The notes beneath the pieces were generated by a model. That model saw only the letters and a list, made by a program, of their open reading frames with translations. It was not told where the DNA came from and made no database searches. A DNA stretch of 63,995 nucleotides, the filler included, from Octopus bimaculoides (taxonomy: Eukaryota), in NCBI RefSeq assembly GCF_001194135.2. It is 6 parts of 5 records of this genome, joined end to end, with 100 filler letters (N's around TTAATTAATTAA, not from the genome) between each part and the next. Parts side by side here need not be neighbours in the genome. Positions count along the whole stretch, not along the records: positions 1 to 18,581 come from NC_068983.1; 5 more parts are not named here. One strand, given 5' to 3'. Positions 1 through 18,581 of the stretch are shown here, one piece after another (positions within the stretch are counted from its first letter, which is position 1; every line of letters starts with the position of its first letter). Position numbers and translations under genes: made by a program.

Positions 1-768
1 CGTTGCGAGGAAATTTTTACAATAGAATGTCTTATATGAATTTTTGTTTATTCCGCCTCTTGATTAGGACAGATTTGTGCAATTTTCCGTAAAAAAACTT
101 TGTTGGGAATTTCTTTTTCCTTTTTAAACTATTTACATGTCTGTTGGACCGTTTCACATGATCTTATTCATTAAAACTTAACAAAACTTGGGAAGTTCTT
201 ACAACTTTGGTCGTCGTAATGCTTTGCTTTCGTTTGTTTAATAAAAATTCCTCCTCGTAATGATTTTGCTTTCATTTTGTGATAGACAGCTATCATGCAG
301 AAAATGCCAGCTTCCAAATTCTGTTTTCTGATTAGGTAAAAATGATTAAACTTCAAACTTCAGTAACATTTTTCTGCTATTTTTCTGGAATAATTAAATA
401 GCAAAATCGGATTTTACGTGGAAAATTATTTCAATATACCGAATTTGAAACTTTTGATGTAATTTTGAAATCTCACAATATGTGACAGAAAAAGAGAAGA
501 CCCTACAAAAGTAGAGAGACAGACGGTTATAGGACATCGCGCGCGCGCGCGCACACACATTTACAAACGTACACACAAGTAATCACGAGTTTAAAACGGT
601 GTATAGTAGACATATGTATGTATGTATGTGTGTGTGTCTGTTTGTCTTTCTGTGTGCGAGTGTTTCTTTCCTATGGACAGTAGAAAAGCTACCTTCTCCC
701 TCTCTCCTTAAAGTTACATATTCCTCACCTTTTTCCCCTTCCTCGGCATTTTAAAAGTTACTTATGTG

Positions 769-806
<38 letters not shown>

Positions 807-865
807 CATATATCTATGTATTTATGGAAGTATGTATGCAGCGTGGCGTGTATATGACAGCTGTA

Positions 866-1180
866 TTAACGTTATTATCCCATTGCCGCTTAGACAACGC
901 TGTTCTCCCTTTACCCGATATCAGTCACCCTCACTCTGTCAGCATATTTCTATATTTCCTTCATATTAATACTCTTTGCACCCTTCTCATTTTATCATAT
1001 AATTCGCCCAAGCCCCCTAGGGGGCACATTATAGATTTTTATTGAAATCTAATTAGTCTATTATTGAACTGGGTGTTAGTTTAATATGTTTGCAAAGTTT
1101 ATTGAAGATTGGTTCGCTGGTTTAGGCAGTAAAATGGTAACAGACAGAAAGACAGAAATTGCCATTTATATATAAGATAT
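866..1180 (-). mobile_element. Possible non-autonomous Helitron/Helentron-like element
   Basis: The minus-strand terminus reads TCTTATATATAAATGGCAATTTCTGTCTTTCTGTCTG, in the style of invertebrate non-autonomous Helitron 5' ends. Internal perfect palindrome GCCCCCTAGGGGGC at 1012-1025. The other end is not resolved. Confidence 0.35.
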
Positions 1181-1699
1181 ATGTGTATATACGCGCGCGC
1201 GCCTGAACTTATAAATTGTGTATGCGCGCACAACATGATACTAGAGTGATATATAGCAATTGACTAAGTTCCAAATTTTTCAAAGATCTTATGTAACTAC
1301 TCGATTTCTTATGGAAGTTCATAAAATATGACATGCTTTTTCTGGGCATTGACGAATCAAAATTCACCATACACTGATATTTCTATCTGTAACATCTTTA
1401 GTTAGGATCGGGTTCTGGATGATGGAGTGTAATATTTGTTTTTGAAAAGCTTCTCTCCTTTTGCGAAAGGACATATCAAACAAAGACTGGCTCTTTGCAA
1501 GTAACGTTACACACCTTGTCTGCTGCATTTAAAAACAACCAAAATATGAAAAGTTGTGACGAGCACTTCGGTGTAAGAGGCTCCTACAAAGCTAAGACAG
1601 CGATATACTTCCAATTGAAGGCTGATGGTATTCCACTTCATTAAAACATTCCCGCTCACTCAACTTTCCACCTCTTGCCATTTTTGACCTGTCTAACAC

Positions 1700-1835
1700 C
1701 CTCGGCCTAGCAGTAACTATTATTACCAGTGCTTTCTTCCCCAGAACATCGCTCTTTGGAATCTTCTCTCAGCTCATGCTTTTCAAGAAGGTATTCTCCT
1801 GCAACAGTGTCAACGGAACATTAATGGCGTCAAAC
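1700..1835 (+). mobile_element. Degraded LINE ORF2 C-terminal fragment (CR1/Jockey-like)
   Basis: Translates YYQCFLPQNIALWNLLSAHAF..LQQC..NIN, resembling the SFFPRT..LWN.LP motif at the end of CR1/L2/Jockey ORF2. Confidence 0.45.
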
Positions 1836-1904
1836 TCACCGATCCCGGAGGGCCTGTCTCTAGAGGTCATGACCAATACTCCTTCCTCAAGACTTCAGAA
1901 GTTA

Positions 1905-2093
1905 TAATTTTTGTGGGGAGGGGGACAATCGATTACACTGATCCCAGTAGGCAACTGGTACTTAATTTATCGACCTGGAAAGGATGAAAGGTAAAGTCGA
2001 CCTCAGCGGAATGTGAACTCAGAACGTAGCGACGGGTGAAATACCGCTAAGCATTTAGTCTAGGGTGCTAACGATTCTGCCAGCTCGCCGCCT
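1905..2093 (-). mobile_element. tRNA-derived SINE family B copy
   Basis: Reverse complement of the GGCGGCGAGCTGGCAGAATCGTTAGC...GAGTTCA head plus the CATCCTTTC..GGTCGATAAATTAAGTACCAG body; recurs at several loci in the window. Confidence 0.85.
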
Positions 2094-2109
2094 AAGTTAT
2101 AATAAAAAT

Positions 2110-2318
2110 AATTCTTTCTATTATAGGTACAAGACCTGAAATTTGGGGCAGGGGGCAGTCGATTACAGTGATCCCAGTACTCAACTGGTATTTATTTTAT
2201 CGATTCCAGGATAGGCAAAGTAGACCGAGACGGCTTTTGAACTCAGAACGAAAAGGCGAACGAAATGCCACGAAGCATTTTGTCCGGCGTGCTAACGATT
2301 CTGCCAACTCGCCGCCTT
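2110..2318 (-). mobile_element. tRNA-derived SINE family B copy (tandem with the previous copy)
   Basis: Same head, body and tail as 1905-2093, including the GGTCTTGTACCTATAATAGAAAGAATTATT tail. Confidence 0.85.
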
Positions 2319-2323
2319 AACAT

Positions 2324-2324
2324 C

Positions 2325-2367
<43 letters not shown>

Positions 2368-2388
2368 GCAGCAGCAGCAGCAGCAGCA
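2324..2388. repeat. (CAA)n(CAG)n compound microsatellite, non-coding
   Basis: Direct inspection. Confidence 0.95.
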
Positions 2389-3020
2389 GGTGTCTGAATA
2401 CAACATTTTGCAAAATCTCATTTATCAAAAAAACAATTTGTGAAATAAAAGTCGTTAGATGCTCGTTCATTGGTTTGTCTGAAAGTGAAATAGTGCATTC
2501 TCGGATATTTTTAGATCCAAGAATTCCACCACACTACTTAGTTCCAGATCCGAAATTTTCAGTATATGAAAATGNNNNNNNNNNNNNNNNNNNNNNNNNN
2601 NNNNNNNNNNNNNNNNNNNNNNNNNNNNNNNNNNNNNNNNNNNNNNNNNNNNNNNNNNNNNNNNNNNNNNNNNNNNNNNNNNNNNNNNNNNNNNNNNNNN
2701 NNNNNNNNNNNNNNNNNNNNNNNNNNNNNNNNNNNNNNNNNNNNNNNNNNNNNNNNNNNNNNNNNNNNNNNNNNNNNNNNNNNNNNNNNNNNNNNNNNNN
2801 NNNNNNNNNNNNNNNNNNNNNNNNNNNNNNNNNNNNNNNNNNNNNNNNNNNNNNNNNNNNNNNNNNNNNNNNNNNNNNNNNNNNNNNNNNNNNNNNNNNN
2901 NNNNNNNNNNNNNNNNNNNNNNNNNNNNNNNNNNNNNNNNNNNNNNNNNNNNNNNNNNNNNNNNNNNNNNNNNNNNNNNNNNNNNNNNNNNNNNNNNNNN
3001 NNNNNNNNNNNNNNNNNNNN

Positions 3021-3062
<42 letters not shown>

Positions 3063-3329
3063 ACTTGCATGTATTTATGTATATGAAAGTATAAAACATA
3101 AGGGACATCAATCTTAAGATCTGTTGCCGTCTTCGAAAATAACGACAATGATTTTCCTTCATCAGGTTTGGTCTCAGTCTTCTTTTACAATTTAATTCTT
3201 AAGATGTTTTATAAAAAAACACAAAACGGTCACAACTATTTCACTAAACTTGTACTTCATTTATCGACCCCGGGAGGATGACAAGTAGAATTTTCCCCCG
3301 AGAGAGAAAGGACGGTGATCCCATAATTC

Positions 3330-3700
3330 TACCAGTCCATCAGTTCTTCGTAGTCGTGCTGCTTTCGCGGATTCCCATAACTCCCTGTCACCATCCAATT
3401 CCATTAGTATGAGTTTGAATAGATTGCTTGAGACATCGTGAATATTTCATTAGCTGATTACACAACCAGGAATGCCACCCCCATGGATGTATTGCAGTTA
3501 CTCTCTTGATAGAGCTTGGTGATCCTAACCGTTGATCTTCTAGGATTCTTTTGCTCAGCATCAATGTAAGAATATTGTTAGCTCAGTTGAACTCTTCTGC
3601 TACCTCTTCACAATCCGCCATGCTGCAATCCCGTGACTTCACCGTATCCCTGGAAGAGTGGCTGTAGAGGTGCTATGCTTTGTCAAATGGCTTGATTGCC
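3330..3700 (-). mobile_element. Degraded RTE-type LINE 3' end fragment
   Basis: The minus strand ends MELDGDRELWESAKAARLRRTDG, resembling the RTE C-terminal DR..W motif; heavily decayed. Confidence 0.4.
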
Positions 3701-4064
3701 ATCCCATGAAGTATTTTCAAAGTACCCGAATACCCAAAGTCCCTCCGTAATTCTTATATGAATTTAGAAAAATTGTTAGAAATTCAAATCCGGCAACTGT
3801 ATTCACATTTGGGTCAATTATTCTATTTTACATTTAGCCAGTTTAAATAGCCATTAATGCCACCATCTGTCGAATTAAACAAAGTCTGTAAGATGTTCAT
3901 TTGAGTCTCTCTTCAAATGCTGCGCATCTTCTACATACGCTAATATATGTAGGAAATCATGAAATTGTGAAGATATATGTACACATTGTATGCGTGTTTA
4001 CATGCGGCTGTATATGATATGTATTTTTCTATACGGAATATATCAGCCGTAATATCTTGAGACA

Positions 4065-4275
4065 ACAAACTGGCAAAATCGTTAGCACGCCGGGTAAAAT
4101 GATTAGCGGTATTTCGTCCGTCCTTACGTTCTGAGTTAAAATTCCACTGAGTTCGACTTTACCTTTCATCCTTTCGGGTCGATAAAATAAGTATCAGTTG
4201 AGCACTGGGGTCGATGTAATCCACTTACCTCTTCCCCAAAACTGCTGGTCTTGTGCCAAAATTTGGAACTAGTAT
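4065..4275 (+). mobile_element. SINE family B copy
   Basis: CTGGCAAAATCGTTAGCACGCCGGG...TTCTGAGTTAAAATTCC...CATCCTTTCGGGTCGATAAAATAAGTA. Confidence 0.8.
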
Positions 4276-4324
4276 CTTCTATTTCTCAAATTTGAGGATA
4301 TCTCATTCGCGTACTTACAGTTGA

Positions 4325-4530
4325 TGTTGTTATTGTTTAGATTTGTTCATCTCTAACCGAGCGCGCTTATAACTGAAACCGTAGCCATTCCATTATATTT
4401 TCAAGTTTAGTATCTAAACCACATCATTCATCCAATATATATCTTTTTTTCCTTTTCCAAGATGATAAGGTATAGATTGAGGGAGATTTCTAGCAGGCCG
4501 ATCGACTACATAAATGTTGGTCCCCTAACT
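4325..4530. repeat. Interspersed repeat family D, degraded (related copies at about 25295-25450, 31580-31750 and 31850-32030)
   Basis: Recurring motifs TTGTTTAG.., GACCAT..GTC, TTATCCA..GTGTCC..CCTTTT and AGATTTGGCT.CTATTTCTAGCA; each copy retains only some of them. Confidence 0.5.
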
Positions 4531-5084
4531 GATGTTATGTCATAAAGGAGATAATTATGAACGTTGTGATTGGAAATTTGTATGATCTAAATTAAGCATC
4601 TCACCAAGTGAGCCAACATCCTGATTTGTGCTAGCAGATAAGATATTTTGTTTTTTACATATCGTCCCAATTCAAGGATATCTCAGAACATTGCGCCACT
4701 GAGTGGTGCCAATCAGATAAACTACTACAATACCTTGGGGTGATTTATGATATTTATAGACACCGCTGAATTTGCTGTCGGAAAGATAGCACCAAAGAGC
4801 AAGTACCGTACAAACTTACTTTTGTCTTTGTTTCTTCGCATTCTGAGTTCAAATGCCATCAGAGTTAACTTTGCTATTTCATGCTCCGGAGCATTTATAA
4901 TATAATGGGATCGATTCGATTGAATCTTACCTTTGAATTTGTGGAATTATGTCAAGGCAAGAAATTGATATCTTCATCATTAAATATTTTTAGAAAAGTT
5001 TGTTACTCCCTTGAAGTCTTATCCTTTAAATAATTTCTCTGTAATTCTTTGAACTTCCGCCGATCAATTTTATCGCAATTTCCT

Positions 5085-5108
5085 AACACTATCTTTCTTT
5101 TATTTCAG
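5085..5108 (+). promoter_or_regulatory. 3' splice acceptor upstream of the start codon (implies an unlocated upstream exon)
   Basis: atctttcttttatttcag polypyrimidine tract plus CAG, 18 nt before the ATG; the frame stays open from the acceptor to the ATG. Confidence 0.55.
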
Positions 5109-5126
5109 TTAATTCCAGAAACTTTA

Positions 5127-5275
5127 ATGAAATCTCCAACAGAAATGGTTTCAAATATTGCTGGACAAAATATAACAATACCTATTGATCTTTTTAAAGA
5201 TTTCGAAAACTTGAAGAATGCAACTAAATTAGACTCAGCCACTTTGATGAGGAAGTTGCTCACTGACTTTCATAA
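5127..5275 (+). CDS. Coding exon 1 of a C2H2 zinc-finger gene (MKSPTEMVSNIAGQNITIPIDLFKDFENLKNATKLDSATLMRKLLTDFH-K); ribbon-helix-helix-like segment
   Basis: ATG at 5127, downstream of a pyrimidine tract and CAG acceptor ending at 5108. Consensus donor AA|GTAAGT at 5276. The phase-2 splice joins in frame to the acceptor TTTCAG at 6554 (AA+A = Lys, then CTG at 6556, in frame with the 6586 ORF). Confidence 0.8.
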
Positions 5276-6554
5276 GTAAGTTTAACGATCTCTCTGTTCA
5301 TACATTCCGCATTGTTTATACGACGTTGTATATAGTTATAGTTGACATTACTTGCTACAAACATAAATTTCCTTGTAAAACATTTTAACACATCATATAC
5401 TCACGCACACACACATTTTTCAATCGATGCTCATATCGCCATTTAGTCATTTATAAGGTAGAAATAATAAGTTTGTGTAGCGTTAAAGTATATTAACAAA
5501 CTTAGCAAAATAAACTTCAGACAGGAATCGAAACCGAATCATGAACTTGAGAGTTCTGATAAACACTAGAACGCCGATTAAATGTATTTCAAGACGCAGG
5601 CTTTTCTTTCTACTGTCTGAATTTAAATAGGTGTGACTTGTCGATAAAGTGACTACCGGTATTACGCTGAGTATAATTTACGATTCTGTCCATCTCTGAT
5701 ATACTTTGCGTAAATTCAAAATAAATATTTATTACTCCCATTCAAATGAGGCGGAGATGAAGTGATACAGAAGCGACATCTTATTTTACTCTTCACGGCT
5801 TCCAAAATTCTGTCATTCTGAGGTCAACAAATTAACTACTAACGAAACAAACAGAAGGATTAATAAAGCTTAAATATGCTAAATCAAAAATCATTATTAC
5901 TTTGTATTTATGACTGGTGTATTTCAATTTCGCTTTAGAGACATTAACCTATTAACACTAATGAATTCTCTCACCATTAGAGTTGTAGCATCCAATTTAC
6001 TTAAGGAAAAATGTGGTAGGAATTGTAATTACATTTGTAGATCTATTCAAGCACACACGATCAAACCTAGAATGAATCGATTATGTTACTATCGGGCTAG
6101 TTTTCTCAATTCCCAAATGTTTCATAACTGGTCGCCATTTGTTAAGTCAAACAGTAGTATATAGTTTTGAATAATATATAGAGGCTTAGTCAATTCATAT
6201 AGAGAAGCCCCTACCCAACTCCCATGGTTGTATGTTAAAGCATACAGGAATCTAATTACACATTCATAGTGATGTTTCACTACAATTGTTTTGTTTATGT
6301 TAGTCGTTTAAAAGTTCATGTTTCAAATGTTTGCTTTCAAATATTCTGTTAAGTTGAAAGTGTCTTTGTTTATGATCTACAAATAAATTAATAGAGAGTT
6401 GATAATTCCTTTTAGGATATTGTACTTTATATTTTTTATACTATTTTCTAATTTTTATTTTTAAAATCTTTCAAACGTTTAATTATTTTTATAAGTTATA
6501 ATTTCTCTCTTATTTTTATTGCCGTTTTCACTTCAATTACTGGTGTTATTTCAG

Positions 6555-9066
6555 ACTGAAAGAACCAGACAGTTCCAACTTCGTTTTGCCAGAAGAAAAT
6601 ATAGCACAAATATCTACAAGTGACTATTCTGAGAAGGCAATAAAGGCAGCAATCGATGCTAACCGCAAACGCATTAAGAAAGAAGACGTGTCTTCTTGCT
6701 ATGAGTGTTCCCCAAGTACTACCATAGCAGACTTAAATACCAGTTTAAGTACCGAATCAGATATCCCGATGGTCAATGGTAACAATAGTCCTGAATTGTG
6801 TGCCAGAAACAAAGATCTCCCACTAAATCAATTTAATATCAAAAGGAAACCTGTAACAGCGAGATTTAAGGTCGCTAAAGTCGTCTGCAAAGAGGAAGAA
6901 AATTCGTCCCTCAATGACAGCTACGGAGTAGATGTGGTACATGGATCGAAATTATTTCAGTCTAAATTAGAACATGAAAATGATAATTCAGTTTGTGAAG
7001 ACAATGTCTTCTACAATAATACTATAAACACGACAGATACAAGAATCTGCCAACCATCCAATGTAGCAAATCCATATTACTATTCTAGTTGTCAGCCTGT
7101 TTCACTGAAAGCAAACCATTTAAGAAATGTTCATACAGTAACAAAGTCAGTCGATCATTCGAAGAATATTTATACACCAAACAATAAAGTAAATTGCCAA
7201 GATGACGGAAGCTACCGAGAATCAGACAGTGAAACGCCATTAGACTTAAGTATTGTAAAATTAGAACCACATTCTTCACATACATCTCTAACTTCATCAC
7301 CTGTACCATCACCAGAAAATGAGCATTTGCACTATCAAAGTAGCAGTAATTGTAGGGACGATATTCATACTGTCAACGTTGAAAATGAGAAAAGTAACCG
7401 TACAGAATATTTTGGAATGCAAGCACATAGAGATAATTCTCCATCTCCAGAGCTAGCACCCACTCAACTTGATGTTAACCAAACTGTTATTAAAAGTAAT
7501 AGTTCATCACCTGAGATAATGAATGTCACACCTGATAAACAGATACGTCCAGATGTAGCGTCTCAGGTATTTAATGTGAAGCAACTGCCAACACAAGTTC
7601 CAAATTGTAATGAAACTCAATTAATTTTGCCATCACAGTTGAATTCGCCTTGCCTCAATGAGGCATCGCCACAAATCGCTAGCAACTATTTTTCAATCCC
7701 AACGCAAGGACCTAGACCAGTTCCAGTTCCAACAAATGTGGTAACATTACAGAAAAATGATAACTGTATGTATGTTTATCCAATGGGTTTTCCAACTTTG
7801 ACAACTATTCCGCAAGGGAGTCATCCAATAGGATTACCTATAATGTCTCAAGCCATGTTGCCTGTACCCAAAATCGATCCATCTCAACAAATAGGACCGA
7901 ACAAACCCTTGGAACAAGACCAATTGAAACTAGTTGCTGAAAGTAATATCTTTCCTGGTGTTTACACTAGCATTTTGAAACTTTCTTCTCACAAAAGATC
8001 TCGTTCAAAGCCTGAAAAGTTGATCTCAGCCCCTGTGTCACAAGTAATCCCTACCACTTCGAGTGTACCAATTCAGCCTATAAATACGCAGACTGTTATG
8101 TTCTTTCCTACCATGCAGCAAATGCAAACATCATGCTTACCAACAAATTCTGTAAATAATGTTCAATCCACTCCATCTTCAACTGTAACAGTTACTACAA
8201 TTGCTCAGGGTAATATCTCATCGCCGAGAGAGTGTGTAACAATGACGTCAGCAGGACAGACTAGTACCCAAACAACAGGTTCGAACCAGCAGTCGATTAT
8301 TATGGTCTATCCTCATACTGGAATTTCAGCATTAGGAAAACCAGTTCGTCGAAGAGGAAGGCCACCGAAACTGCCAATGCTCACACAATTACTGATAGAT
8401 AAAAAACCGAAATTAAACGTAAACCAAATTAACGAAGAAAAAAAACTTAAGGTTGAAAATCAGAGTGAGTGTTCAATAGTGCCGACACCTTTTCCAGCGA
8501 TGAGCAGCAATATCAAACCAGAAATAAAAAGATCTCACGAGAAGGATTGCGTTGAAATCATACCTGATTCTCCGGCAAACGTTATTGGAGACAAAGATAA
8601 CGATAAATTAAAACATTTTGAAACACCTTTGGAACCTAAAAAATCAGAATCATTATATCAAGAAATGATTTTATCTCCTAAGTCTTTAAAAAACATAAAG
8701 CCTCGCAAGTCGCATTCTGCCAATGATTTCATGAAGCCGAATGCTAATTTTATATGTACATCATTCAGAATTCGGCCGAGAGCGTTCAGAACACGGCGAA
8801 ATGGTGGCACTCGAGGCCGGAAGAGCTCGAGATTGTCCCAGCCAGTGCAGTCGGAATCTATCACGTCTCCATTACAACAGCAGATAAACCAGCAGCAGCT
8901 GGAGTTTCAGCAACAGCAGTTGCAACAACAGCTACAACAACAATTACAACAACAGCAGCAGCAACAGTTGCAACAGCAACAACAAAAGAAGATGCAAGAA
9001 CAACAGCAGCAACTTCAACAGCAACTTCAACAACAGCTGCAACAACAGCTACAACAGCAACAACTG

Positions 9067-9098
<32 letters not shown>

Positions 9099-10230
9099 AC
9101 AACAGCAGCAGCAACAGCAGCAGTTACAAAATGTGCAACAGCTGCAGACACTGAAACAACACCAACCACTGCTGAAGCTTTCTCCAACTCAGATGCATGA
9201 ACATGATGATGAAGACGATGAAGAACAAGATGCAGAAGAGGAAGAAGACGGAAACGAAGTATTAAAAGAGAGGGAAGGAAAGATTCTTGACAGTCCCTCA
9301 AAGTCCTTGCACTGTAACGATGTCAACTCAAATTCGTCTGATGACCGACAGACTGAAGATGATTTCTTGGAGTTTTCATCAGGTAAAAATCTTTTCCAAG
9401 AGCTTTATCACTGTAAAATATGCAACGACATTGTCTCTTCAGACGAAAAAGTCTCGCATCAAAGGCAACACGTTCCCGTGCGATTCTTCTGTCAGTCATG
9501 TGGGATGGAGTACCAATGCTTCTGGGTAAAGAGCCCAGTTACTGAAGACGATAACCCACCGGAACCGATGGAATGTGACCGATGTAATACCCATTTCTCC
9601 AGTCAAAAATACGATTTCAGTTGCTGCCTGCAAATACAAAATGGTAATATTCTGTGTGATCTATGTGTCGAACAGTTTCGGACTTTCACACAATTTTATG
9701 ACCATCGAAATAAATTTCACCCTAACAGTCCCACAACTCCTGCTAACCATTATGTGTGTGATAGTTGCGACAAAGTTCTTTACTCTGCGAAAGCACTCCG
9801 TTATCATCGGAAGTTACATTTAGACCGTACAGTACAGTGCACTATTGGTGATTGCCCAAGGTTCTTTCAGAATAACATGGAGTTGTCACGTCATATACGC
9901 GAACAGCACGACAAAATGAAAGAGTTCTTTTGCATATATGACGGCTGCAACAAGAAATTTATGAAAAATTTTCATCTACAAGAACATGTACGCGTAAAGC
10001 ACTTCAACATCCGGGCATTTCGTTGCTCGTGGCCCGGATGTACGAAAGAGTTTGCAGCAGAGCGACATCTCAAAGTGCATCTCTTAATCCACAAGGACGA
10101 AAAACCTCTAAAGTGTGACTTTTGTGAGTATAGATGTCGTCAGCGAAATGCCTTAAATTGGCACATGCGCAAACACCCTGAAGCACCTTATAAATATAGA
10201 AAATTTTCAATTAATTCATCGGACTGTTGA
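6555..10230 (+). CDS. Coding exon 2 of an AT-hook/poly-Q/C2H2 zinc-finger protein, ZFP91/ZNF653/ZNF692/ZNF276-like; about 1274 aa with exon 1
   Basis: Uninterrupted ORF of more than 1200 codons. It has an RRRGRPPK AT-hook, a long Q-rich tract, an acidic D/E tract, six canonical C-x2/4-C-x12-H-x3/4-H fingers and one atypical finger. The last finger KDEKPLKCDFCEYRCRQRNALNWHMRKH closely resembles the GEKPLQCEICGFTCRQKASLNWHMKKH finger recalled for the ZFP91 family. Confidence 0.95.
8344..8373 (+). other. AT-hook motif (VRRRGRPPKL) within the zinc-finger CDS
   Basis: Canonical R-G-R-P core flanked by basic residues in the translation. Confidence 0.85.
8875..9147 (+). repeat. Coding CAA/CAG poly-glutamine tract interrupted by Leu
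   Basis: Mixed CAG/CAA codons translating to QQQL-type repeats followed by a pure Q run. Confidence 0.95.
9412..10176 (+). other. C-terminal C2H2 zinc-finger array (6 canonical, 1 atypical, plus extra CxxC pairs)
   Basis: Spacing counted in the translation: CKIC-x11-H (atypical); CDLC, CDSC, CTIGDC, CIYDGC, CSWPGC and CDFC, each followed by x12-H-x3/4-H. Confidence 0.92.
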
Positions 10231-11210: not shown

Positions 11211-11832
11211 CGCACACACACGCATACACACACACACACACACACANNNNNNNNNNNNNNNNNNNNNNNNNNNNNNNNNNNNNNNNNNNNNNNNNNNNNN
11301 NNNNNNNNNNNNNNNNNNNNNNNNNNNNNNNNNNNNNNNNNNNNNNNNNNNNNNNNNNNNNNNNNNNNNNNNNNNNNNNNNNNNNNNNNNNNNNNNNNNN
11401 NNNNNNNNNNNNNNNNNNNNNNNNNNNNNNNNNNNNNNNNNNNNNNNNNNNNNNNNNNNNNNNNNNNNNNNNNNNNNNNNNNNNNNNNNNNNNNNNNNNN
11501 NNNNNNNNNNNNNNNNNNNNNNNNNNNNNNNNNNNNNNNNNNNNNNNNNNNNNNNNNNNNNNNNNNNNNNNNNNNNNNNNNNNNNNNTATATTTGTCTTT
11601 CGAGGTAGGTCAGTGTTGCTCTTTTTACATTTCTATACTACAAGGAGATAAAAAGTCGTGCATATTTTCTAAGAAGCATTCCAGGAAGAGATATTCTGCG
11701 TATTAAATTTCTACGTCTTTATCATTTGTTCAGAATTATATCTGACAATTTGAAGGTTTTTCAGTGACAATTATTTGAAAAAGATGTTTACGAAAAAGTA
11801 GAATCCTTGAATTGTATCATTGTTTTTTATTT

Positions 11833-15456: not shown

Positions 15457-15981
15457 NNNNNNNNNNNNNNNNNNNNNNNNNNNNNNNNNNNNNNNNNNNN
15501 NNNNNNNNNNNNNNNNNNNNNNNNNNNNNNNNNNNNNNNNNNNNNNNNNNNNNNNNNNNNNNNNNNNNNNNNNNNNNNNNNNNNNNNNNNNNNNNNNNNN
15601 NNNNNNNNNNNNNNNNNNNNNNNNNNNNNNNNNNNNNNNNNNNNNNNNNNNNNNNNNNNNNNNNNNNNNNNNNNNNNNNNNNNNNNNNNNNNNNNNNNNN
15701 NNNNNNNNNNNNNNNNNNNNNNNNNNNNNNNNNNNNNNNNNNNNNNNNNNNNNNNNNNNNNNNNNNNNNNNNNNNNNNNNNNNNNNNNNNNNNNNNNNNN
15801 NNNNNNNNNNNNNNNNNNNNNNNNNNNNNNNNNNNNNNNNNNNNNNNNNNNNNNNNNNNNNNNNNNNNNNNNNNNNNNNNNNNNNNNNNNNNNNNNNNNN
15901 NNNNNNNNNNNNNNNNNNNNNNNNNNNNNNNNNNNNNNNNNNNNNNNNNNNNNNNNNNNNNNNNNNNNNNNNNNNNNNNNN

Positions 15982-16339: not shown

Positions 16340-18250
16340 AGCAAAAATATGAGTTAGAGGTTATGCAACCGTCTAAGGGATAAATGTATCCGTAGGCACT
16401 ACTGGTGTATTACCTGACTATGTATAGGTCTTATTATAAGATTAACAGTAGTTGGTAATTTAAATGGTAAACTGTGGTTTAATATAAGAAAAGAAATGGA
16501 GCAACAATTAACAATTAGAAGTTGATCATTGGTATTAAATGGTCATAGTTTAATTACAGCTGTTTCAGTTTGTTATTTTTTAGGTAAATTTGCATTTATC
16601 TCGTTTCTTCTACTGACAGAAGAAAAAGGAAATAAGTTCGTTAAGTCTTTACGTTTACATTTTTGTGTCCTTTAAAGGTTGTACGTGTGTGTACATTTCT
16701 TCAATTAGATGACTGGAGTAGTAAGTGGGGAAAATGACTAGTTGACCGACGGTGTTAGTTGAAAGAGTAATAACTGGTAGTAATATCTGGTGTCATTAAT
16801 TGTAATAAGTAACGCTATTTGAGTCCGCTAGATAAGTCCCTATGATTACAAATAATGCCCTTGCTAAAAATTCAGGATGCTCTTAAAAGTTTAAGTGCGA
16901 TAAACGGTATAAATCTGGGTTACATAAAAAGGTATAACGAATAAATGAAATGTTGTTATGTGCGGTGCGGGCTATCTACTCGTTAATATTATTAAAATCA
17001 ACCAACTCGGCTAGAATAGACTAAATTGCTCATTTAATCGTACTTATGTTATTGACAGCCCAAGAATTTGCATGTTAGTCAGTGATCTAACTTTAATGTG
17101 AATATATTAAAGAGAATTATAGCTCCAGGTGTACATCGTGCATTTAAAATAAATAATTCAGTTAGTCGGAGTAATTTTATATAATTATGATTTATGATAT
17201 TAAATCATGCTTTGTGGTAAAGGAAAAGGGGTCAAGGGGAGGTAATCAGATGTTAGACAGGTTAGCTAATAACCTGTAATGTAGGTATTAGCGGTATTGT
17301 ATGTTTTTCTCGTCTCGTTTATTAAGTAATTCTGATTTGGCCATTAAAATGAATTTCTCATTAATGCATAAAGTACAGCGATTATTTTTAAGGTTATATA
17401 AAGATGTTTGGCTAGGATGCGCCACTCTAATTTATAATTAACGTTATCGTTAAGTTCCCAGATGTAACTGCTTAATCCGGTAGAGTTAGCCTTATTTCTT
17501 TTCTGAAACTTGAGAGATGGGAATTATATCTAAGTTTCATTTCATTTTTAGTTGCTCCTATATAAGTATTCTTGTAATTATTGGAGAATACATCACGTTG
17601 GTAGATTACATTCTTAGTTTTACATTTATTCAAGAATTCACAAGTATTTTTATCTCTGCAACCACATAGATTAGTAAGATTTGCTGTGCCTATGATATGG
17701 TGAGGGAGATTATCATTTATAAGGTGGTTGTCCGTATTTTTAGAGGGTGATTTACTTGGGGGATCGCTTATTATATCAATCGATTGGTTATTGTGATTTT
17801 TATTGCTATTCTTCCTAGTTTCGTAGACGGAGTCTAGCCTTTTATTGTTAATAGAGGCTATAATAGTACCTAGGTTGCTAGTTAGGTTATGGCCTATTCT
17901 AATTTTATTGCTAAAGATTTCTGAGTATTTCGTATTCATATTGAAGTGCTTATTTATAAGTTTCATTATAGATTTGACTATATTAGTTTTTAGTTGTATT
18001 GCGAAGGAAATTATTAGCCAAATGTTATCCTTATTCCGCTTGTTATTCTTAATATTTTTGTTCTTGGTGTAAAAATTTCCCTCAGTGTTGTTGTAGATCG
18101 TAAATTTATGGTTATAATTATTCTTCTTCTTTCTATTGTTATTTTTATTGCTATTGCTTTCAGCTTTGGTAGGGTTGTTCGTATTCGATTTATTTATTTT
18201 ATTTACCTTGGTATTATAATTGCTAACAGGGATTTTATTGGTTCTTTTAG
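16340..18250 (-). mobile_element. 5'-truncated, frameshifted Penelope-like element (GIY-YIG endonuclease region plus AT-rich 3' region)
   Basis: Minus-strand translations: DNIWLIISF..KTNIVKSIMKLINKHF, CGCRDKNTCEFLNKCKTKNVIY..V..TYIGATKNEMKLRYNSHLSSF, SSYIWEL..LEWRIL, RCTLCINEKF..LLNKRDE. These are typical of the PLE linker and GIY-YIG domain. The coding part is about 17290-18250; the 3' boundary is approximate. Confidence 0.88.
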
Positions 18251-18252
18251 GT

Positions 18253-18254
<2 letters not shown>

Positions 18255-18344
<90 letters not shown>
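18255..18344. repeat. (ATT)30 microsatellite
   Basis: Direct inspection. Confidence 0.95.
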
Positions 18345-18581
18345 GTTCAGTAGTTTTATTTTTATAACGTGCTTTCACTTCACTACCGAGCGCAGCTCTG
18401 TGCGCCTTGGGTATGTGCTGTGGTTTGCTGTGGTGCTCTTATGTTTACTGTATTGAAAGTGTTTTGCGTAGAATGTGTGCAGTACCCAGTAGTGCAATTT
18501 TCTGTATGTTATATATATTTGTAAGTCCTGGTGTTTTTGTTATGTATTTGTCTGAATATTTTTTATTATACCTAAGGCACC
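18345..18581 (-). mobile_element. 3' end of an R4/Dong-clade non-LTR retrotransposon
   Basis: With one frameshift in an A-run the minus strand reads GALGIIKKYSDKYITKTPGLTNIYNIQKIALLGTAHILRKTLSIQ* (stop 18445-18447), matching the recalled R4/Dong C-terminal GALG...QK..LLGTA.ILR motif. A short 3' UTR runs straight into (AAT)n. Confidence 0.85.

Follow-up and report, generated by a model that had tools for sequence, protein, structure and literature searches.

The question that this locus of Octopus bimaculoides raises is whether a small coding exon of a C2H2 zinc-finger gene encodes a ribbon-helix-helix (RHH) like module, i.e. whether a fold that is regarded as a prokaryotic and phage DNA-binding fold has a counterpart in an animal transcription factor. 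The locus lies in the first part (C3:100437054-100455690 of the 2.34-Gb genome) of a window of 63,995 nucleotides, by which we mean the whole stretch of DNA that was analysed, filler included. This DNA is eukaryotic, has 36% G+C and contains CA/TG microsatellites and assembly gaps. We consider it on balance probable that the exon encodes an autonomous strand-helix-helix module of about 35 residues with an RHH-like fold, which likely acts as an intertwined dimeriser of the zinc-finger protein. An RHH-like fold is the best reading of the combined tests, each of which stays below its threshold when taken alone.

The gene model on which this reading builds comprises the following elements.

5109-5275, plus strand: small coding exon with the RHH-like module, 167 nt, entered in phase 0 and left after two bases of a codon
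5127-5129, plus strand: candidate start ATG from sequence reading, possibly internal should the gene have a coding exon further upstream
5145-5147, plus strand: second in-frame ATG, in a better Kozak context than the ATG at 5127, which may likewise be internal
5276-6554, plus strand: GT...AG intron of 1279 nt with canonical splice sites, conserved in position and phase in Solemya
6555-10230, plus strand: large terminal coding exon of about 1224 codons plus stop (3.7 kb), within the open reading frame (ORF) 6502-10230

The small exon is bordered by a polypyrimidine tract plus CAG, with the AG acceptor at 5107-5108, and by the GTAAGT donor at 5276-5281, and its reading frame is open from 5034. 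Translation of 5166-5273 on the plus strand gives QNITIPIDLFKDFENLKNATKLDSATLMRKLLTDFH, which reproduces the motif of the initial annotation. With 5275 joined to 6555 (acceptor ...ttatttcag) the reading stays in frame through a completed Lys codon (AA/A), and the product counted from the ATG at 5127 is a C2H2 zinc-finger protein of 1274 amino acids, in which Pfam finds zf-C2H2 (E 5e-7) at the C-terminus and leaves the N-terminus without any match. Both Met positions of the small exon are kept in a cephalopod fragment (P0004), which is the closest fragment to the motif of the window with 79% identity. Tblastn of bivalve orthologues matches 5163-5276 with 58-65% identity, the match ends at the exon edges, and the flanking introns remain unmatched. 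The gene of Solemya velum (locus L016) has three coding exons and carries the motif on an exon of its own (exon 2, 153 nt), to which the small exon is homologous with equal phases at both ends. The Solemya intron after the motif splits the third codon past LLTD[YF] after its second base (AG/G), and the AA/A codon of the window is split at the identical position and in the identical phase. Many short ORF fragments of other molluscs in databases end two residues past D-Y, at the point where an intron would cut them. The 5275/6555 junction, which had been proposed for this exon beforehand, is very likely real, as the intron keeps its position and phase, the splice sites are canonical and the frame continues across them. 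When paralogues were sought in the whole genome with the Solemya N-terminus, the locus of the window alone was matched, so the module is single-copy in this genome.

Homologues of the motif are confined to molluscs as far as they bear a name. A word-indexed search with residues 1-110 gave proteins of three bivalves, Solemya velum, Sinanodonta woodiana and Potamilus streckersoni (motif identity 56-65%). HMMER, run exhaustively over 1.84 billion representative proteins with a profile of four sequences (A1), gave 38 matches at the cut-off of E <= 1e-3, about 30 of them clear family members and the remaining ones multi-stretch matches to repetitive proteins. All named matches of this search are molluscs, some short fragments being without source name, and no named vertebrate or prokaryotic RHH protein was found at that cut-off. 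Family members occur in gastropods (Lymnaea, Physella, Biomphalaria, Elysia, Plakobranchus, Nucella, Haliotis, Patella, Lottia, Gigantopelta, Pomacea and Batillaria), in bivalves (Solemya, unionids, Tegillarca, Mya, Dreissena and Mercenaria) and in the chiton Liolophura. No gap is needed to align the motif among orthologues from cephalopods, bivalves, gastropods and a chiton, i.e. from all four mollusc classes sampled, as the initial annotation required for its reading. Among 28 non-redundant mollusc segments there is not a single gap over 33 core residues; seven residues (P19, D21, F26, T33, L40, R42 and L44) are invariant and four more (L29, L35, M41 and Y48) nearly so. The module thus appears to span the mollusc crown group and was probably conserved since the mollusc ancestor.

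Its distribution bears on another origin of the module, namely homology with the N-terminal domain of vertebrate proteins of the ZNF653, ZNF692 or ZFP91 type, which would make it an old bilaterian domain. The last finger of the octopus protein, C-x2-C-x-Y-x-CRQRNALNWHMRKH, resembles what we take to be the last finger of this group, and one Elysia orthologue is automatically named "zinc finger protein 692". This origin is nevertheless very unlikely, given that the named profile matches are molluscs throughout, that a word-based search with the Patella finger region also returned molluscs only, and that the vertebrate N-termini compared with the family hidden Markov model (unverified sequences) gave no real match, ZNF692 scoring -2 bits and ZNF653 not being reported. 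The mollusc and vertebrate proteins share adjacent C-terminal C2H2 fingers, but the vertebrate group has no detectable copy of the N-terminal module, and the mollusc proteins are two to four times longer. For the vertebrate side, ZNF653 (Zip67) is described as a repressor with five fingers and a cofactor of nuclear receptors (PMC6348741). The link to ZNF653 and ZFP91 drawn in the initial annotation found no support in the exhaustive profile search; the module appears to belong to a mollusc-wide family, for which vertebrate membership is not demonstrated.

Within the exon, the module is divided into four segments.

5169-5183, plus strand: putative beta-strand N15-I-T-I-P19, with hydrophobics alternating at 16 and 18 and an invariant Pro, extended in the AlphaFold2 monomer and aligned to the RHH strand by hhalign
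5184-5225, plus strand: helix A, residues 20-33, IDLFKDFENLKNAT, helical in AlphaFold2 at 20-33 with a block pLDDT (predicted local distance difference test) of 95-96; D21, F26 and T33 invariant
5226-5234, plus strand: three-residue loop K34-L-D36, consensus [KNH]-L-D as against G-x-S/T in classical RHH, from AlphaFold2 and column composition
5235-5270, plus strand: helix B, residues 37-48, SATLMRKLLTDF, helical in AlphaFold2 at 37-47; L40, R42 and L44 invariant

This arrangement is that of the prokaryotic and phage RHH proteins (Arc, Mnt, CopG, ParD and the N-domain of NikR), with a strand, a Pro, a helix of about 14 residues, a loop of three residues and a second helix. It shares with them the hydrophobic register (i, i+1, i+4, i+7 in helix A and i, i+1, i+4, i+5, i+8 in helix B) and a conserved Arg in helix B, and RHH families give the best and almost the sole marginal profile matches and structural neighbours. 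In contrast with those proteins, the module sits on a single exon of an animal gene and is fused to a C2H2 protein of about 1200 residues; its strand is shorter and without conserved polar or basic residues that contact DNA, its loop has no Gly, it is slightly acidic, and nothing in it scores above threshold.

At the sequence level the likeness was measured by scanning the 28 orthologue segments against 24,736 Pfam families. RHH_1 (PF01402, curated cut-off 20.5 bits) was matched marginally by nine of the 28 segments (best E 0.021) and RHH_9 (PF19839) by three of them (best E 0.004), and the only other match of the scan was to Spectrin_4. Reversed segments, in which composition and helical periodicity are kept, gave four unrelated single matches and none to RHH. 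The functionally named matches in a PHROG scan were one Arc-like and one CopG-like repressor and no others, while an NCBIfam scan of the module returned noise alone (DfrG, gcvH-like). A six-frame scan of the whole genome with PF01402 left the small exon unmatched and gave one unrelated weak match.

When the mollusc alignment (A2) was compared by hhalign with a profile of canonical RHH domains (A3), the score was 17.8 (P 0.0015), with strand placed on strand and helix on helix. The null distributions lie well below, as 300 column shuffles of A2 gave a mean of 7.9 (standard deviation 1.8, maximum 15.5) and the reversed A2 gave 9.1. Accepted RHH families score 7.8-21.5 among themselves, values that serve as a yardstick only because the family alignments obtained from the A3 search are near-identical to their seeds and too narrow for strong profiles. 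As 17.8 falls into this range, the mollusc module resembles RHH to about the degree to which RHH families resemble each other. The register of the match that had initially been drawn by eye to a generic RHH pattern is recovered by hhalign, but the match is not ungapped as then stated, since the loop requires a gap of one residue.

The predicted structure points in the same direction. AlphaFold2, run as a single chain on residues 1-49 with alignment A2, gave a mean pLDDT of 81.7 with helices at 20-33 and 37-47 separated by the three-residue loop (block pLDDT 91-96) and with the NITIP segment extended and non-helical. A Foldseek search of this monomer against 350,542 PDB chains returned nearly exclusively RHH proteins among its best 50 matches: Arc, CopG, CopA_SO, StnY, ORF56, HicB, CdbA, ParD and NikR, further RHH-type MazE and VapB, MatP, AmrZ, PutA and NikA, and also the RHH-like plant TCP domain (chains 7vp3 and 7vp6). 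TM-scores were 0.55-0.72 at a root-mean-square deviation of about 2.4 Å over 36 columns, with a probability of up to 0.82, and the viral library BFVD, which yielded Arc-like and CopG-like phage proteins, agreed with the PDB. The full-length AlphaFold2 model of the Patella orthologue (842 amino acids, alignment of 19 sequences) contains two folded regions, the module (helices 42-55 and 59-75, pLDDT 87-91) and the C-terminal fingers; the rest has a pLDDT below 50, and the module makes no contacts to other parts.

Several observations weigh against an RHH-like fold. No match reached a curated family threshold, the window's own peptide had zero Pfam matches, and searches of the PDB sequences, by the peptide as well as by the profiles A1 and A2, returned no RHH protein, the matches being those of chance level (a repeat protein, YAP1, Spc24 and cullin). 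The hhalign probability of A2 against A3 is just 16.5%, and the nine canonical RHH domains that make up A3 were entered by hand; these seeds are sound inasmuch as a database search with A3 recovered 498 real Arc, CopG/NikR, ParD, RelB and Omega proteins. Foldseek E-values are at least 0.36 in the PDB and at least 0.1 in all libraries. DSSP assigns no strand to NITIP in the monomer model, in which a ribbon strand cannot form. Two core-facing hydrophobics precede the Pro, compared with three in typical RHH proteins, and the G-x-S/T/N turn of RHH proteins is absent from the module, with the usual Gly missing (after the invariant Thr the 28 segments read [K/N/H/R/Q]-[L/M]-[D/G], with Gly at position 36 in four of them). 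Finally, AlphaFold2 may do no more than impose RHH geometry on any sequence of such a pattern; it learns the same pattern that profiles see, and the structural and profile lines are therefore not fully independent. The marginal Pfam and PHROG matches, hhalign, AlphaFold2 and Foldseek all point to the RHH-like reading of the initial annotation, each of them below threshold. A different idea, prompted by the weak cullin match, was to read 'FEALKSATKLDxxxLMRKL' as a helix-turn-helix or winged helix, and it was rejected as no helix-turn-helix family occurs in the Pfam or Foldseek lists.

That every RHH signal is sub-threshold also leaves room for a conserved amphipathic helical hairpin or linear motif which folds on a heterologous partner such as a co-regulator, its likeness to RHH being convergence on a simple pattern. 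The module stands isolated in a long disordered region rich in short motifs (PLDLS, AT-hook), its conserved polar residues D21, D25, T33, D36, R42 and D47 could form a partner-binding face, and M-R-K-L-L of helix B resembles co-regulator boxes when read by eye. Such a hairpin would hardly explain, on the other hand, why a conserved I-x-I-P strand immediately precedes helix A, why the helix lengths and the loop match RHH, and why the marginal matches and the Foldseek lists are nearly all RHH instead of other two-helix folds. We regard this partner-binding hairpin as possible but rather unlikely.

If the RHH-like fold is accepted, its presumable function follows from the composition of the module. 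About 12 of its 35 residues are hydrophobic, and since a lone strand-helix-helix of this length could not bury them, it would have to pair with itself or with a partner. The likeliest mechanism is that two copies intertwine in the manner of Arc or CopG, by way of the I-x-I-P strand and both amphipathic helices, and we infer that the intertwined module would dimerise the zinc-finger protein, taking the role that BTB, SCAN or ZAD plays elsewhere. With BTB/POZ, SCAN and the insect ZAD it would share the nature of a small lineage-restricted N-terminal module proposed to dimerise a C-terminal finger array, but those domains have unrelated folds and no sequence similarity to the module (no Pfam matches).

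The module would most likely pair proteins, and its ribbon probably does not read DNA. In the 28 segments the outward strand position 15 is occupied by Q/H/N/K/F/Y/V and position 17 by A/E/T/D/V/S, i.e. the strand has no conserved basic residue and lacks the DNA-contacting strand feature of the RHH superfamily; acidic residues stand at the N-terminus of helix B, and the mean net charge of the core is -0.9. Strand composition, acidic helix B N-terminus and charge together make DNA reading by the ribbon appear unlikely. They speak against a true DNA-binding RHH, whose dimeric ribbon would enter the major groove as a second DNA-reading head beside the fingers; the N-terminus of helix B is the place where RHH proteins touch phosphate. 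Although classical RHH proteins and the plant TCP domain do bind DNA through the ribbon (PMC9841405), and although the invariant R42 aligns with the conserved Arg of the RHH_1-type helix B, this variant seems to us very improbable indeed.

The plant TCP domain was long labelled bHLH and has since been shown to be RHH-like; its strand is very short, its first helix measures about 14 residues, its loop is short, and in structure it comes nearest to the RHH proteins of bacteria (PMC9841405). TCP (AtTCP10, AtTCP15, OsPCF6) shares with the mollusc module its place in a eukaryotic transcription factor and its build, in which a first helix of about 14 residues follows a very short strand and a short loop leads to the second helix. 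TCP, however, itself binds the DNA, its strand being the basic R-V/I-R and a hairpin being added at its N-terminus, whereas the module is acidic to neutral, lies beside a separate DNA-binding region of fingers and has no sequence relationship to TCP. Since the module yields no model match above threshold and its strand lacks conserved DNA-contacting residues, we do not file it as a member of the RHH superfamily: it would work like an RHH, membership being not proven, and a new animal RHH-like module is a plausible description.

The position of the exon within the gene is less certain than the initial annotation has it. An upstream exon encoding M-x-x-RRKS-x-x-P opens every complete bivalve model and most of the complete gastropod models; in most complete orthologues the motif reads M-[AS]-[HSF]-R-R-K-[SGN]-x-x-P and lies on a separate first exon (P0001, P0002, P0007, P0009-P0011, P0014, P0022, P0168, P0176 and others; in Solemya at L016 10001-10120). 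It resembles in sequence the N-terminal motif of FOG, SALL and BCL11 that recruits NuRD, which presumably has Q where the mollusc motif has S. In the octopus this exon was not found by a degenerate DNA pattern in the window (including 1-5108) and in fetched loci, nor by tblastn and regular expressions in the 60 kb upstream so far as these can be read (about 21 kb are N), and a genome-wide pattern search gave nothing near the locus. The model of the chiton Liolophura sinensis (P0197, RefSeq XP_064611083.1) has its Met start inside the motif exon (MSEVSSSGGLDEKEQISVPKDLF...) and no RRK exon, so that the gene start may differ among mollusc classes or the chiton model may be incomplete. As most complete orthologues carry the upstream exon, the designation of the small exon as "first coding exon" in the initial annotation is doubtful, although the chiton start and the two Met positions kept in P0004 speak the other way.

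The same N-terminus is missing from a large part of the databases. Of 28 further orthologue models, about 20 have their start within the large exon and possess neither the RRK exon nor the module (P0170-P0175, P0178-P0180, P0182, P0184, P0186-P0195); for the most part they stem from Logan or ENA assemblies in which ORFs alone were called. The initial annotation had foreseen for the octopus that the exon would be lost on ORF-only annotation, and nearly all ORF-only orthologue models indeed lack the module. The N-terminus of this family is systematically under-annotated.

Downstream of the module, the large exon encodes the following features.

7237-7251, plus strand: PLDLS, matching the CtBP-binding PxDLS pattern, in a region predicted to be disordered; P-L-D-L invariant in 19 full-length orthologues
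7951-7983, plus strand: conserved block FPGVYTSILKLPWSRRSR (FPGVYTSILKL, in orthologues followed directly by PWSRRSR); G, V, Y, T, S, K, L, P, W, S and R invariant
8335-8376, plus strand: AT-hook-like GKPVRRRGRPPKLP, assigned by motif pattern only; R-G-R-P-P-K invariant in orthologues
8908-9129, plus strand: Q/L-rich low-complexity tract of 74 residues with QQQL repeats and a run of 22 Q, absent from bivalve orthologues
9394-10185, plus strand: C-terminal C2H2 region, Pfam zf-C2H2 in five stretches, ending with the finger KCDFCEYRCRQRNALNWHMRKHPEA; folded in the Patella model

From 7345 to 10212 the large exon runs collinear with its counterparts in bivalves (tblastn E 2e-130). The blocks that the octopus and bivalve proteins share are PLDLS, VVxxQKNDNCMxVYP, FPGVYTSILKL, the AT-hook GKPVRxRGRPPKLP, LYQEMILSxKSL, NFICTSFRIRPR and the finger region. 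The strongest conserved stretch outside the module and the fingers is FPGVYTSILKLPWSRRSR, which AlphaFold2 renders disordered and whose PWSRRSR part has diverged to SSHKRSRS in the protein of the window. Owing to its absence from bivalve orthologues, the Q/L tract is apparently a lineage-specific low-complexity expansion within a conserved gene. The order of elements in orthologues is the N-terminal RRKS motif, the module, PLDLS, the AT-hook and the C-terminal C2H2 fingers. PLDLS, the AT-hook and the RRK motif of most complete orthologues suggest, as motif patterns, that this long and mostly disordered protein is a transcriptional repressor.

Elsewhere in the window, a very Asn-rich open frame of 300 codons with a run of about 34 Asn extends over 17472-18374 on the minus strand. 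A by-eye reading of it as a GIY-YIG remnant ('...VIYQ...YIGAT...') was dropped as the Pfam scan was empty, and it may be a decayed mobile-element ORF or just low-complexity sequence. Three runs of N (2575-3020, 11247-11587 and 15457-15981) are each flanked by a (CA)n or (TG)n microsatellite and look like assembly gaps within dinucleotide repeats. All six frames are "open" across them, which inflates the ORF list.

In literature searches no animal RHH domain was found described, the plant TCP domain being the only well-documented eukaryotic relative found (PMC9841405). We put forward tentatively, as a proposal that falls a little short of probable, that the mollusc proteins constitute the first animal transcription-factor family with a genuine RHH dimerisation domain, which would be pan-molluscan, have an age of more than 500 million years, occupy one exon of a C2H2 repressor gene and be either captured from a prokaryote or phage or convergent. 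In much of the available data the module is invisible, as many database gene models, mainly the ORF-only ones, are without its exon. If the proposal is true, the reach of the RHH fold would extend to protein pairing in an animal zinc-finger repressor, and the C2H2 repertoire would gain a new lineage-specific oligomerisation domain. An uncharacterised regulator that occurs throughout the molluscan phylum would thereby acquire a testable architecture consisting of RRK motif, dimeriser, PLDLS, AT-hook and fingers.

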